Shown here in pieces: positions 2,762 to 9,109 of a DNA stretch of 64,000 nt. The notes under the pieces were generated by a model. The model saw only the letters and a list, made by a program, of their open reading frames with translations. It made no database searches and was not told the DNA's origin. The first letter of the stretch is position 1, and each line of letters begins with the position of its first letter. Source of the stretch: Entomortierella parvispora E1425. Lineage: Eukaryota > Fungi > Mortierellomycota. Made by a program: the position numbers and the translations under genes. The stretch lies in the NCBI GenBank assembly GCA_020891255.1, contig BQFW01000011.1:1612001-1676000 (forward strand). Reading direction: 5' to 3'.

Positions 2762-4972
2762 ATGCGCCCAACTAGAGGCCGAAAGCCTGCAATCAGGACA
2801 GCAACAGTCGCTGACGATAACACGACCACTAGCACCGCCACTCCCTCTGCACGTTCTACTCGATTGTCGCGAAGAAATCAACCGAATGAAAACAATGAAA
2901 GACGCGTCGCGAACACAGAGGATAATCAGAGCAAGAATCGCATTTCCTCAAGCCCAACTCTTGATTCCGACAAGCCGAAATCGACAAAGAACAAGAAGGA
3001 CATTGGGTTCACCATCATTATCCCTTACAAACCTTTTCCCAGAAAACTCACGCAGAGCAGTGTCACTCAACCAAAGGCTTCAATCGTTTCGGAAGACGAC
3101 CGTGGTGATGAGACCGTGGAGACCAAGCCAACAAGGACGAGGAGGGGTGCACGTCGCATCGAAGAGAAATCCCACATCCCATGCTCGGGCGATGAGGTAG
3201 ATGACATCGAATATCCACGCCAACAAGTACAACGAATGGAAGCCGTCGTCCTTTTCGAGAAACCACGCATACTTCGGAAGCCAACCCCATCATCAAATGC
3301 CATTTTGGAGCAAAAACTGGAAAAAATGACCGAGGAATCCGCACCAGCAACAATCAGCGCCATTGCCGAGGATATCACAGCAGCAGCATCCGAAGGACTT
3401 GACGTTGGATCCTTTTCCAGACTTTCCATCACGCCACCACCTTCGTTACCATTGTTTGATTTGAAAGATCCCGATGGCTCAGGAAGTCCTTGGTTGATGG
3501 TGTTTGATTCCTCAGAACACTCTGCAAGCTCTCGACCATCACAGCTTCAAGAAAGCTGGAATGATGAGAATACATCGCCTGCACCGGATTCACCATCGTC
3601 ACCAACACGCCATCACTACACTCGCCACCACAGTGAGATCGCTAGAGATCAATCTGAATATCCAGCGTCTGCTACGTCTTCGAAAACCGAAAACCACGGA
3701 TGGATGGACGAGGATCACGATACATCAGAATCAGGAGACAAAGGCGAGGATGATGACGATCCTTTTGGATTTTCAAAAGTGGAGCGGCGAATCAAGAGAG
3801 CGCAAATACTACAACCTATCTCGAGATCCCGCACACCTTTGGATCCGGACGACGACTTTAGTACCGGAATCGACATTGTCAATCCTTTCAACCCACCTAG
3901 ACCGAGACGCAGGGGTGAAACAAGGAACAAGGGAAAGGGCGTTGACAGGACCTGGTTTTTGACCAAAGATCCTTTGCACCCAGATACGACTGCATCCGAG
4001 CCCAAGGGAGGGAGCGAAGACCTGAGAAAAGCCATAGAACTCAGCAAAGCCGATACAACTTCAATGAACGAAAAGGAGCAGGAGGATCTCAAGAAGGCTT
4101 TGCAACTTAGCATGGGCGTTGATTTGGATTCAGGCGTTGGAACATCCTCAATGGCTGCATTGCTCTCTCGCCCAGAAACAGCTCTGGTTCGTGAGGTGGC
4201 TTCCAGCGGTGCTATGTCTCGTGCCGAAACCAACGTAGCTACACGATCCATCCGCAGCCCTTCACCCGAGTCAGAACCAGAAGATCTCTTTGCGGTCACT
4301 GAGCCTTGCACTACGCGAACGAGAAGCCCAGCTCCCCCATCCACGCCACCAAGGAAATCTAGGAGCAACCACAACCGAATCTCTTTTGGCGATATAGACG
4401 AGCTCCCAATTGTGATTGAAAGAACCCCTACCAAGAAACCGGAAGCTGGCATGCCTGCTTCCATGGAATCTCCGTCCTCCAAGGACGGTCGAGGAGGAAA
4501 AGCTGGCAAGACAAAGAGAACTTACATGCGAACGGAACAACTGGAAGCTCTTTTACCTCGACGCAAGAAAGCGCGAGTCGTGACCACAAACTCAAAGTCT
4601 GCGGCGATCCGTCTGGATGCCAGTGACGATGAAGATGAAGATGAGGAAGAGGACGAGGAGGATGAGGAGCCACTACTTCGTCAAGGTCGGACCCGACAAC
4701 TTACTAAGGCCGCCTCGACAACCTCAGTCGCGCCTCCGAAACAAACGCGGGCAAAAGCTGCGTCCTACAAGAATACCGCAAAGTCTACGACCTTGAAACA
4801 GACCTCAGACAAGAAGGGCAAGGGCAGGAGCGAGGACAGTGACCACATCAAACAACAGAGTGGCGAGGACAAGAGTGGATGGACAGAGGCTCAACGGAAA
4901 GCCCATGAAGAGCGGATCCTCTACTTTGCGGAAATCGACAACTTCGAACTGGATGTGGAAACAACTCGATAA
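2762..4972 (+). CDS. Sororin-like (Sor1/CDCA5-type) cohesin regulator, intronless and mostly disordered, with two UIMs
   Basis: Acidic FGF motif DDDDDPFGFSKVE (FGF at 3764-3772) and C-terminus RILYFAEIDNFELDVETTR resembling the Sororin C-terminal motif. ATG 2762 chosen over the ORF-track start at 2687. Confidence 0.7.
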   Translation: MRPTRGRKPAIRTATVADDNTTTSTATPSARSTRLSRRNQPNENNERRVANTEDNQSKNRISSSPTLDSDKPKSTKNKKDIGFTIIIPYKPFPRKLTQSSVTQPKASIVSEDDRGDETVETKPTRTRRGARRIEEKSHIPCSGDEVDDIEYPRQQVQRMEAVVLFEKPRILRKPTPSSNAILEQKLEKMTEESAPATISAIAEDITAAASEGLDVGSFSRLSITPPPSLPLFDLKDPDGSGSPWLMVFDSSEHSASSRPSQLQESWNDENTSPAPDSPSSPTRHHYTRHHSEIARDQSEYPASATSSKTENHGWMDEDHDTSESGDKGEDDDDPFGFSKVERRIKRAQILQPISRSRTPLDPDDDFSTGIDIVNPFNPPRPRRRGETRNKGKGVDRTWFLTKDPLHPDTTASEPKGGSEDLRKAIELSKADTTSMNEKEQEDLKKALQLSMGVDLDSGVGTSSMAALLSRPETALVREVASSGAMSRAETNVATRSIRSPSPESEPEDLFAVTEPCTTRTRSPAPPSTPPRKSRSNHNRISFGDIDELPIVIERTPTKKPEAGMPASMESPSSKDGRGGKAGKTKRTYMRTEQLEALLPRRKKARVVTTNSKSAAIRLDASDDEDEDEEEDEEDEEPLLRQGRTRQLTKAASTTSVAPPKQTRAKAASYKNTAKSTTLKQTSDKKGKGRSEDSDHIKQQSGEDKSGWTEAQRKAHEERILYFAEIDNFELDVETTR

Positions 4973-5132: not shown

Positions 5133-6759
5133 CTACCAGTAGGCGAGTTTGGCCTTGTTGAACATGTCGGCATAGGCATTCGTAGTCGCACAATCAGACT
5201 TGTGCCACGTCTCCATAGCTTCGGGCATCCACTGTTCCAGTTTGACAACCCGATCCTTACTGGCAGGATGGGTGTTCAAAAAAGCGAAAGAGAGACCCTT
5301 CTCCTGGTTCGACATACGCGTCCACATCTTGGTGCTCTCTCGAGGATCAAAGCATGCCTGAGCTATGAGTTGAAGACCAATTTGATCCGCCTCAGTTTCG
5401 CACTTTCGACTGAATGGAAGCTAAGGATGAAAACAAAAAACGATAAGAAAAGATGGTTTCAGAGTCTCTGCTACCCTCAGCTGGATGTGGTGTTAACAGA
5501 TTCCTTACCATCATTCCAAGCTCCATCAACACCCGCTGAGAGGTATAGGAGGGATCAAACACAATCGCAACAATAGCTCCAACAAAGAGTGCGATCTTGG
5601 TAAAACTCAGCTTCTCGGCAGAATGGCGGGCCAATTGATGTGCAATTTCGTGTCCCAGAACCGTCGCCAATCCGTTTTCATTCTCTGCAATGGGCAAAAT
5701 GCTGAACGTTACAAGTTAGAGTCAGCAAACATGATTTACAGAAACAGTATCATAAGAGCAAAAAAAAATACAACATACCCAGTGAACACAAACACCTTTC
5801 CTCCTGGCAGCACAAAGGCGTTCTTTTCGTCGCTGTGGATAACATGAAACTCCCAGTCCAGATCTAAAGCGTGTCGTTGTAATCATGAGCAGCAAAGTAA
5901 AGGTGCGTTAGTTCGTGTTCTGTGGACTGAATATCTATCCAGGCAACATATTGAAGACGTGAATAATACCCTGCATTCCTGCTGCCTTGATAATTCGTCC
6001 TGCTACTCTCTTGACGTATTGAGTGTAGGCGTGGTTCGCTGGCAACATTTGATTTCGGTACTACAAATCAGAAGGAAGTAGGTCAAAAAATGATCATTTC
6101 ATAGTTCCTGGTCCACAGTGGGCCATACCTCGTGCATGACTTGGTTATATGCTTCTTTAGCCATCATCTCTTCTTGTGCTTTGGAAACATCCATGAATCT
6201 CCGGCGACCCGTCATTGGCACCCTAAACGCATACGTCAAGGCGCTCGGTTAGATAATCGACTTTTTTTTTTTTTTTTTTTTGGACATGGAGCAAGAACCA
6301 GGGGTGAACAATCGACATCCAGGGTGAAACAACATACGTTTCCAAATGGGTTACGTAGTACCCTCCCGCTCCTACTGTGACAACCCCTCCAATAACCTGG
6401 TATCGCCTGTCGTAAAAGATGGGCATGCCCCGTCCTCCTTTGCCTTGGCCGTTGTTTTGACCAAAGCGCTTGTATTGGGGTCGGAGGATGATCTTGCTGA
6501 TGGAATCGGAATTAGAAGATGAAGGTGGTTGTGGTCGAGGAATCATGTCTCCCCATGAAGACGACGGCGGATTCCGTGCATTCACTGAGGAGACATGAAT
6601 GCTACGAGCAGAGGTTGTTGTAGTTGTGGGTAATGTCCTGGAGATGCATGCAGGGCTGAAAAGGCGGGCAGTAAGAGAGGCCCTTCCTTTGAGGCCGCTT
6701 TGCGCAGCGAGGGATACTGCTGTCCTGGATAACGTTGCGGCCTGTCTTGCAAAGGACAT
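5133..6759 (-). CDS. OMA1: Mitochondrial metalloendopeptidase OMA1 (peptidase M48), multi-exon
   Basis: Arg/Ser-rich presequence [31 protein letters not shown]...[15 protein letters not shown], the HEXXH motif [16 protein letters not shown], and FLNTHP. Confidence 0.93.
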
Positions 6760-6909: not shown

Positions 6910-9109
6910 CTACATCTTTGACTGGGGGATCTCGCCTTCCTCGGTGGCCCATGCTTTCAGGATATGGTGCGCAATGGCTATTTCAACAGGATTTAGAGTG
7001 AGTATCATTGTTCAGTCCATGGTTTTTCATTCACATTATCATTCATATCGCAATCATGCTTACCAGTGGCAGGAGGCAGGCGCAATTGATTGCCCTCTGA
7101 AGGTTTACCCCAGTTTACACCTCGAGATCCTTTCAATGCCTCCAGGATCTGCGATCGGCTGAACCAACGCGCATCCTCCAGTTCTTTATCTTCCAAGGTC
7201 ACGTTAGGGTCCTCGTTCAATGCCTCAGCATGGCAACCAATCATAAGCGAGTTGGGGAACGGCCAAGGCTGCGAAGAATGGTACATGACATGTCCAAGAC
7301 GGATGCCTGACTCTTCCTTAACTTCGCGTCTGGCTGCCTCTTCCAAAGACTCGCCTGGCTCGACAAATCCAGCAAGGCAAGAGTACATTCCTTGTGGCCA
7401 AACAGCTTGTCTTCCGAGAAGGACACGATCGCCATCTGGCGATATCACACAGACAATAACGACGGGATCTAAATATTTGGCCAGGAAATCAAGAGTTAGA
7501 TATTGGAGATCCTTGGAAGGCCCGCAAGTCAACAGGGGCAGTTGGCAGACTTGCCTGTCCGGGGATAAGTAAAGTTTTGAACTCCACGATGGGCCAAGCA
7601 ATCAGAAGGCTCCTCCTTGCCAGATTCCGAGACAATAGTCGACGAGCAAGTTCTCTTGTGGCCACCGTCAAGAGACGCATTCCTGCGTCCGCATCCGGCG
7701 CAAAACTTGTTGCGCTTGTTCCAGTCTACGACAGAACGTGCTTGGGCCACCAACCCACTTTCTGGGAAGGAAAGTCCAAAGGCAGCAGGTCGTGCTTCGG
7801 CCATGTAGTGACCATGTTTCTCCGTGAGCGAGTTTGTGAACGACTCCACGGCGTCTTTCAATTCTTGTTTCACGCCAGGGCCCTTTGCAGACATGTCCAA
7901 TGCCCAGTAGCCGACTCCACGACGGCCATGGACCAAGGTCTCCTCCGTTCCTGTTTCATCAGCGCCCAAGAACACAAGCACGAGTCCCTCTGGCAAGTTG
8001 TTCAAGGGATCGGATCCAATCAAGTGTTGGATATCCTGATGGCTGACAAAGGCCAGATCCTTGGTCGAAGACTTGAACAAGACACCATGGTCTGCCAAAA
8101 GCAAGAATTTGGTTGTAGGTGCCTGGACTGAAGCATGAAGATACTCTTTGTCCGTTCTCAAAAAACTCAGGCTATAAAGGAAAGGCGTTTTAGTCCACAG
8201 AAAAGAGGCCGATGGATGGATGGTGACTCTTTTTTGTTCAACTCCATCTCGACGCGGCATGGTTTTCTACAGCACCAAAAACCTTACCGATTATGAATTC
8301 CTCCGGTAAAGTGCAGAGGCTTGTTCTCGTGCACCGTTCTCCTCTTCCACCAGTCTGCCATCGTCGAAGACTTTGATCCGTCGGTGACAATACCGGCGGC
8401 CGCAGCCATGCCTGACGACGCTGATGAGAATGGCGATCCGGAACCGGTGACGGCTCTGGCCACTGTTCGGCTCTTCGGTGCCAGCCGATCAAAGACAGCC
8501 AAAGCCTCGGCCGATCCCCAAAATTCTGCCAGGTCCGCAGCAGTCTTGTTGTCCTTGTTCGTGACCATGGGGTCGACCTTTGCTTCGGCCAAGAGGTATT
8601 CTACCACTGTCGAATGACCATAGCGTGCTGCGAACATGAGCTGAAGAGAAGCGAAAAATGTAGAACGGGGTCGTAGGTATTAGTTGGTGATCGGAGCATG
8701 ATCGGCCGGGGTTGGGTGTACCGGAAAGTCTGACGAGCTGGGAAGAGAGCCAAGTACTCACTGGTGTCCATCCACGGTCATTCTTGGCTTCGAGGTGGAT
8801 GCGACCGAGAGACTTGATGTAATCGAGGTTGCCTGAGGCAGCGGCCTCAAAGATATCTGTTGGTTGTTGAGACATGAGGAATTGGTGCTTTGTGCGAGCG
8901 AAGGCGCTGAACGGTGACGCGGGAACGGCTCGAGTTTGTGGTTGCAGGTGAGAACGCTTCCACGGCTGCAAGATGGGTCTTGATGGGCGAATGAATGTGC
9001 AAGTGCGGGGAACAATTGCAGAAGAGAAAGAAGAAGAAGAAGAAGAAGAGAAGAGGCGATGTGGAAGGATGGAAGAAACTCGGGTGCGAATCTGCGCCGA
9101 GGCCATCAT
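6910..9109 (-). CDS. NPY1: NADH pyrophosphatase / NAD-capped RNA hydrolase (NUDT12/Npy1 family) with N-terminal ankyrin repeats
   Basis: Ankyrin repeats (GWTP|LMFAARYGHSTVVEYLL), zinc ribbon FCAGCG, Nudix box GFVEPGESLEEAARREVKEESG and SQPWPFP signature. Spliced last exon ends ...GEIPQSKM* at 6910. Confidence 0.93.

Follow-up and report, generated by a model that had tools for sequence, protein, structure and literature searches.

A conserved candidate ubiquitin-interacting motif in a Sororin-like protein family of Mortierellomycotina

A 64,000-nucleotide stretch of DNA from Entomortierella parvispora E1425 (contig BQFW01000011.1; the whole stretch is referred to below as the window) was analysed around the gene for a Sororin-like protein, P0001, which contains two units that fit the consensus of the ubiquitin-interacting motif (UIM). 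The downstream unit, UIM2, recurs across the protein family and we take it, by sequence, to be a genuine UIM. What the alignments support is one UIM conserved in the family, joined in a single lineage by a second copy, UIM1, lying upstream of it. In the reading that we favour, and hold with moderate confidence, the gene at 2762-4972 is the Mortierellomycotina counterpart of Sororin/Sor1, equipped with the family UIM2 and, in the clade of the window, additionally with UIM1, and ubiquitin binding would modulate the residence of the protein on chromatin-bound cohesin.

The UIM units of P0001

Two UIM-consensus units are encoded by window positions 4013-4123 (forward strand), and their serines, Ser428 and Ser450 of P0001, are 22 residues apart, as the original prediction had noticed. 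The peptide quoted there is encoded by 4016 to 4117, so the positions given with it were off by at most 3 nt (one codon) at either end; the translation of 4013-4114 (forward strand) is SEDLRKAIELSKADTTSMNEKEQEDLKKALQLSM. The UIM consensus, an acidic run followed by Phi-x-x-Ala-x-x-x-Ser-x-x-acidic (Phi, hydrophobic residue), is fitted by both units, EDLRKAIELSKAD and EQEDLKKALQLSMGVD, as is the pattern acidic-Phi-x-x-A-Phi-x-Phi-S. In 20,000 shuffles of P0001 the core Phi-x-x-A-Phi-x-Phi-S occurred in at least one copy in 6.9% of cases and in at least two copies in 0.25%.

The Pfam UIM family (PF02809; gathering cut-off 21 bits) gave 12.7 bits (E 0.12) with full-length P0001, a score below the cut-off that weighs against the assignment. 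An excised 57-residue piece gave 32.8 bits (E 4.6e-8) with two stretches matched; excision flatters this score and independent evidence was therefore sought. UIM2 alone, in a 35-residue piece, scored 19.5 bits, and the pieces from the orthologues P0002 and P0003 scored 26.2 and 27.3 bits, respectively. The best match of the P0001 piece among the sequences of the Protein Data Bank (PDB) was the tandem UIM of ataxin-3 (2KLZ; E 0.035), with both units aligned, which bears out the proposed likeness to UIM1-UIM2 of ataxin-3. The runner-up was the pair of UIMs of Vps27 (1Q0V), and the string RKAIELS is common to UIM1 of Vps27 and UIM1 of P0001.

AlphaFold2 was run on residues 400-480 of P0001 with five orthologue rows. 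Each UIM is predicted to fold as a single alpha-helix, spanning residues 415-429 for UIM1 [predicted local distance difference test (pLDDT) score ~71] and 437-451 for UIM2 (pLDDT ~86), with residues 430-436 between the helices unstructured in the model. A helix-linker-helix arrangement is also the architecture of free ataxin-3 UIM12 (PMC2951365).

Relatives of P0001 were collected by a word-index search, which returned four, and by searching 1.84 billion cluster representatives with a profile, which returned 29 proteins. Those with a name belong to Linnemannia, Haplosporangium, Mortierella, Podila, Actinomortierella and Gryganskiella, together with one short protein from Mycena. Conservation was scored on a 23-sequence family alignment with a mean column identity of 0.38 over the protein, in which UIM2 is one of eight sharp conservation islands. 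For UIM2 itself a set of 19 representatives bearing the element, clustered at 50% identity and drawn from several Mortierellomycotina genera, was used. Ala446 and Ser450 are the only invariant columns in the 35-residue UIM2 segment of this set, and a near-invariant Asp precedes them. Searched against the PDB, the UIM2 family profile placed the UIMs of ataxin-3 (E 6.6e-5), Vps27 (E 0.023), STAM2 (E 0.058) and ANKRD13D (E 0.35) at ranks 1 to 4, and Pfam UIM or UIM_2 matched 11 to 12 of the 19 pieces.

The family also conserves G-x-D-x-x-x-G-E/V-G-C/S-S-S directly after UIM2 (window 4124-4150, forward strand), outside the UIM definition. Such a conserved G-x-D...G-E-G-C/S-S tail suggests that the element may do something else, and counts against the favoured reading. 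A SUMO-interacting motif at this place (VDLD / LDV) was considered and rejected, the canonical Phi-x-Phi-Phi core being present in one orthologue only.

Distribution of UIM1 and UIM2 in the family

A maximum-likelihood tree was calculated from 24 full-length members of the family. It is unrooted, and about 20 of its 765 columns come from the UIM itself.

UIM1 is confined to the clade of the window (P0001, P0002 and P0003) and is intact in two of the 24 full-length representatives, P0001 and P0003. Its absence from all members outside this clade and the replacement of its key Ala by Thr in P0002, the closest relative (68% identical), are points against the favoured reading. The Ser-Ser spacing is 22 in P0001 and in P0003, which is 32% identical to P0001 and keeps an intact UIM1, and 25 in P0002. 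The mean column conservation of UIM1 is 0.19 versus 0.38 for the protein as a whole. From these alignments UIM1 appears to be young and weakly constrained, and the tandem would be a local elaboration of the family-wide single UIM; on the tree the tandem state has a single origin, in the P0001-P0003 clade (support 100). Conservation of the Ala and Ser positions among orthologues, to which the original prediction had attached weight, thus holds for UIM2, where both are invariant in the 19 representatives, and fails for UIM1, in which P0002 has Thr for Ala and which is absent from most of the family. Nor was a conserved tandem reader of polyubiquitin chains, as had been proposed, borne out: the pair is degenerate in P0002 and absent in all other representatives beyond P0003, and the idea was rejected on the clade-specific occurrence of UIM1 in the orthologue alignments.

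UIM2 is itself missing from some lineages. The Podila (P0024, P0025) and Actinomortierella (P0028) orthologues are without any UIM though they keep the other islands. The Mortierella alpina orthologue (L003, 1501-3342) is an unbroken open reading frame (ORF) without the central ~200 residues, so that the UIM, the PSTPP site and the RRRG-KGK island are all gone; the Sororin box is retained together with the FGF, PEAG and LLP islands, which makes this protein a natural deletion variant. An artefact of the gene model was rejected as the explanation, since a single uninterrupted ORF is present and the deletion is therefore real. Absence from Podila, Actinomortierella and M. alpina suggests that the UIM is dispensable for the core function of the family, which again weighs against the favoured reading; because some genera are without it, we regard the UIM as modulatory rather than core. 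On the tree the Podila and Actinomortierella proteins make up one side of a well-supported branch and M. alpina is nested among UIM bearers, so that presence and absence amount to two changes. One gain plus one loss and two losses are equally possible histories.

Two distant short proteins, P0030 from Mycena and P0031, are weak matches that have the FGF motif and a box-like C-terminus and are without a UIM. The P0031 gene (L001, 3001-3876, forward strand) is fungal and comes from the assembly of a public sequencing run. Its called ORF contains DDDPFGFSKVE and LTALLPKRR, and a box-like ...RLRMYDDLDKFSLEEEVVY begins at about L001 3921 (forward strand) in another frame after the ORF, which implies an intron missed by the gene caller. 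A ZGRF1-like gene is located upstream of this short Sororin-like gene on L001. A further relative, P0011 (1741 residues), is a single gene model that joins an S8 subtilase to the C-terminal half of a Sororin-like protein. It is probably a merged annotation, because in M. alpina (L003) a Peptidase_S8 gene (1-1288) directly precedes the Sororin-like gene; the S8 and Sororin-like pair is probably syntenic across genera.

Identity of the host protein

The ORF around P0001 runs for 2,286 nt without interruption, its first ATG at 2762 gives a product of 736 residues, and the gene model requires no intron. A listing of RNA runs contained none for this gene, a point against the favoured reading. The product is present in the ESM Atlas as a letter-for-letter match with a mean pLDDT of 0.40, and the protein is predicted to be disordered. 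Comparison of whole P0001 with the PDB sequences gave low-complexity noise only. ESM Atlas searches with whole P0001 and with its C-terminus gave no usable feature match, and structure matches are meaningless for a protein that is disordered.

P0001 is likely to be a Sororin orthologue. The animal Sororin-box consensus is [W/F/Y]xxxPhiNxxFxE[A/Phi][E/D]x[F/Y]ELxPhiE (PMC10656103), and in the P0001 terminus, ...YFAEIDNFELDVETTR, the segment FAEIDNFELDVE fits every specified position of the 12-residue core FxE[A/Phi][E/D]x[F/Y]ELxPhiE, 3 residues from the C-terminus. The chance expectation of this core is 1.3e-7 for P0001 and ~9e-4 per proteome of 5 million residues, and the box is its sole match in the six frames of the window. 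Residues F299, V302, D303 and Y305 are needed for the function of Schizosaccharomyces pombe Sor1 (PMC11148194); their counterparts in P0001, as assigned by the pattern F-x-x-[V/I]-D-x-[Y/F] and not by alignment to Sor1, are F722, I725, D726 and F728, of which two, F722 and D726, do not vary in the family. AlphaFold2 models the box as a five-turn helix (residues 709-726, pLDDT ~90) followed by an extended tail, which fits the published description. Where Sororins have a K/R-rich stretch before the box, the segments found here are rich in Lys but of mixed charge (KKGKGRSEDSDHIK in P0001, KRKDKGKGK or KSKKAV in relatives).

The highest conservation peak of the family alignment (0.87) is DDPFGF. 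The FGF motif is the element by which Sororin and Wapl bind Pds5 (PMC11148194, PMC10656103), and it is a candidate for the same role here.

The Pfam family Sororin_C (PF25220; gathering cut-off 27.4 bits) is the only one that recurs among the C-termini of the family, in 14 of 25 at E up to 1, the best being 3.4e-4. C-terminal position and hydrophobic pattern were the criteria by which the accepted Sororins of S. pombe, Yarrowia and Arabidopsis had originally been chosen, at E 1, 0.03 and 0.04, respectively, and the Sororin_C result for the present family, with its best E of 3.4e-4, is stronger than this range of 0.03 to 1.

Several observations weigh against Sororin identity. Sororin_C scores lie between 16.4 and 17.5 bits (E 0.004 to 0.009; for the box of P0001, 17.2 bits, E 0.005) and never reach the cut-off, and the full-length Pfam scan of P0001 gave no match to a Sororin family. 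The upstream half of the box consensus ([W/F/Y]xxxPhiNxxF) is unmatched, with a Trp at -15 and no aromatic residue at -8. The FGF motif is located ~370 residues upstream of the box and not near it, and the vertebrate flanks of the motif ([S/T]Phi before, ExL after) are unmatched in P0001. No annotated Sororin was linked by the profile search of 1.84 billion proteins. A PDB search with the C-terminal 60 residues found nothing, and with the C-terminal family profile only weak matches at chance level came up, RPA1 and Grc3, neither of them a Sororin chain. P0001 has no KEN box, nor was a YSR-like motif seen in it; neither feature defines the wider family, since the accepted Sororins of fungi and plants also lack them (PMC11148194). 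The proposal that the host is a Sororin is supported by the box core, the FGF motif and disorder, and weakened in that it depends on short motifs and on Sororin_C scores below threshold.

Besides the box, the FGF motif and UIM2, the family alignment contains further conserved islands. The coordinates of all features are given in Table 1.

Table 1. Features of the Sororin-like gene and its product in window coordinates
Feature	Position	Strand	Evidence
Coding sequence of Sororin-like protein P0001, single exon, stop included	2762-4972	+	Unbroken ORF; orthologues colinear over full length
N-terminal island SRLSxxPPPxxxF...PWxMxFDS	3410-3514	+	Conservation peak at ~residue 224; invariant residues
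FGF motif DDDDPFGFSKVER, candidate Pds5-binding element	3749-3787	+	Invariant D332, D333, P334, F335, G336, F337
Basic island RRRGxxxxKGKxVDR	3902-3949	+	Peak at ~residue 387; invariant R382, R384, G385, K390, G391, K392
UIM1 SEDLRKAIELSKAD, residues 418-431; lineage-specific, weakly constrained	4013-4054	+	Consensus fit; predicted helix
Linker TTSMN between UIM helices	4055-4069	+	Non-helical in AlphaFold2 model
UIM2 EKEQEDLKKALQLSMGVD, residues 437-454; family-wide UIM	4070-4123	+	Invariant A446 and S450; profile matches; predicted helix
PSTPPRK; full cyclin-dependent kinase (CDK) consensus (TPxR/K) and S-T-P candidate polo-box docking site	4331-4357	+	Invariant P526, S527, T528, P529; regular-expression scan
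Island TPTKKPEAGMPxSxES; second full CDK site	4409-4474	+	Peak 0.85 at ~residue 560; invariant P556, P560, E561, A562, G563, P565
Island YMRTEQLEALLPRRKK (YMxTEQLEALLPRR)	4517-4570	+	Peak 0.84 at ~residue 596
Sororin box SGWTEAQRKAHEERILYFAEIDNFELDVETTR	4874-4969	+	Core consensus match; AlphaFold2 helix; sub-threshold Sororin_C

Vertebrate Sororin is regulated by Cdk1 and Plk1, and by analogy PSTPPRK may be read as a site for a CDK and a polo box. The full CDK sites in PSTPPRK and TPTKK are consistent with cell-cycle control. The motif LTALLPKRR of the distant short protein P0031 is related to the island at ~residue 596. This island and those at ~residues 224, 387 and 560 are candidate new short linear motifs for the binding of cohesin regulators.

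Two genes on the reverse strand follow P0001 in the window. A spliced gene at 5133-5700, which encodes a zinc metallopeptidase of the M48 family (HEIAH motif; Pfam Peptidase_M48, E 3e-8), is convergent on the 3' end of P0001, and an ORF at 7529-8260 contains a NADH pyrophosphatase-like NUDIX N-terminal domain and a zinc ribbon (Pfam E 3e-7 and 3e-4, respectively).

Possible function and alternative explanations

P0001 would protect cohesive cohesin from WAPL in the manner of Sororin/Sor1, with its C-terminal Sororin box binding the Smc3-Scc1 junction and its FGF motif the trough of Pds5. UIM2 would form a single amphipathic helix in the disordered middle of the protein, its Ala and Ser packing on the Ile44 patch of ubiquitin. 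Where UIM1 and the flexible linker are present, the ataxin-3-like pair could engage a ubiquitin chain, or two ubiquitins at once, with a gain in avidity; the UIMs of ataxin-3 bind mono-ubiquitin at ~100-300 µM and the pair binds di-ubiquitin at ~10 µM (PMC2951365). Ubiquitin binding of low affinity would then modulate the site or the duration of the protein on chromatin-bound cohesin. Acting in trans, the UIM may recognise a ubiquitylated cohesin, replisome or chromatin partner. Acting in cis, it may couple the protein to its own ubiquitylation and turnover, which could replace the missing KEN-box route of removal; UIMs are described as also promoting ubiquitylation of their own host protein (PMC2951365). 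The analysis shows the motifs, how they are conserved, the predicted helices and the motif-level likeness to Sororin; that P0001 would bind ubiquitin or cohesin, or have a role in the cell, is what we infer from these, and the originally suggested recruitment to chromatin that is ubiquitinated, or to sites of replication or damage, is pure inference.

Known systems resemble P0001 in part. Ataxin-3 (2KLZ) likewise has two UIM helices on a very short flexible linker, and its strings EDLQRALALS...ADLRRAIQLSM run parallel to EDLRKAIELS...EDLKKALQLSM in P0001, the Ser-Ser spacing being 20 in ataxin-3 versus the 22 of P0001 (25 in P0002). Unlike ataxin-3, the P0001 host is unrelated and without a Josephin domain, and the second unit alone is conserved in its relatives. 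RAP80, a chromatin-associated scaffold, likewise has a tandem UIM, and gains avidity for ubiquitin chains at specific chromosomal sites from its pair. In RAP80 the linker turns into one rigid, continuous helix by which K63 linkages are measured, whereas the TTSMN linker of P0001 is predicted to be non-helical and varies in length among relatives, so that no linkage preference can be inferred; a preference deduced from the 22-residue spacing was rejected, the linker being predicted to be flexible and the spacing 25 in P0002. The single UIMs of Vps27, STAM2 and ANKRD13D have the same sequence core as the UIM of the P0001 family; these proteins act in endosomal sorting, whereas P0001 is without VHS, FYVE, SH3 and ankyrin domains. 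Sororin, S. pombe Sor1 and Sordaria Sororin are largely disordered like P0001 and have the C-terminal box and FGF motif, and the fungal members are without a KEN box. The Sordaria protein (701 residues) is similar in length to P0001, and S. pombe Sor1, as published, has no Pfam domain. P0001 differs from the known Sororins in that its family has one or two UIMs, a distant FGF motif, no YSR motif seen and four extra islands.

Each part of this reading has an alternative. UIM1 may be a chance or decaying motif without function, P0001 working with a single UIM like its relatives, an alternative of some weight that we nevertheless doubt. It would account for an intact UIM1 in just two of the 24 full-length representatives, the Thr at the Ala position in the closest relative, a column conservation (0.19) under the background (0.38) and the frequency with which one core pattern arises on shuffling (6.9%); yet P0001 and P0003, distant from each other at 32% identity, both keep a full-consensus UIM1 at the same 22-residue spacing, and UIM1 is predicted to be helical and has RKAIELS in common with the verified UIM1 of Vps27. 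That the family-wide element is a look-alike which does not bind ubiquitin, namely an amphipathic helix docking Pds5, Scc3 or Wapl with the G-x-D...GEG(C/S)S tail in the same interface, we consider quite improbable, given that the only invariant columns are exactly the UIM-defining Ala and Ser, after the usual acidic run, and that the top four PDB matches of the profile are UIMs and nothing cohesin-related. Such docking would explain why conservation runs past the UIM into G-L-D-V-x-x-G-E-G-C-S, and would have parallels in Sororin, Wapl and Esco1, each of which docks on Pds5 by short helices or motifs (PMC10656103); the affinity of UIMs for mono-ubiquitin is also typically weak (~100-300 µM for those of ataxin-3).

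The host might also not be a Sororin orthologue at all, and instead be a disordered nuclear scaffold specific to Mortierellomycotina (in repair or replication, for example) with a real UIM and a likeness to the box that arose by convergence. All Pfam Sororin_C scores are under the gathering cut-off, neither the PDB searches nor the search of 1.84 billion proteins tied the family to an annotated Sororin with statistical significance, and the islands at ~residues 224, 387, 560 and 596 are without a known Sororin counterpart. We judge this alternative to be unlikely. By chance, the exact 12-residue consensus match that P0001 has at its very end would be expected less than 1e-3 times per proteome; disorder, length and an invariant FGF motif are all as in Sororin; and the evidence by which the published fungal Sororins were identified, before genetics confirmed them, was weaker. 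P0030 and P0031, short proteins with an FGF and a C-terminal box-like motif, form a bridge to typical short Sororins.

The UIM, the tandem UIM and Sororin are each known; the new element is their combination, so far seen in one fungal subphylum. No paper in the library searched pairs Sororin with a UIM, in agreement with the original prediction that no Sororin had been described with UIMs; Sororins outside the family were surveyed through this literature and through P0030 and P0031. The subphylum is little studied, the UIM is dispensable in some of its members and the case made here comes entirely from sequence. It was not until 2024 that orthologues of Sororin were recognised in organisms other than animals, and those of fungi are without the KEN box used in vertebrates (PMC11148194).

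A conserved UIM in a Sororin-like protein offers a testable handle on the recruitment and removal of fungal Sororins. A natural comparison set is available in members with no UIM (Podila, Actinomortierella, M. alpina), with one (most genera) and with two (the clade of the window). If the favoured reading is true, ubiquitin signals could help to place or clear a cohesion protector, a coupling to ubiquitin that has not been described for any Sororin. Tentatively, and with less expectation than for the reading itself, the Sororin-type protector of most Mortierellomycotina might be a ubiquitin reader whose UIM, doubled in the clade of the window, recognises a mark on cohesin, the replisome or chromatin and so ties protection from WAPL, or its own turnover, to ubiquitin.

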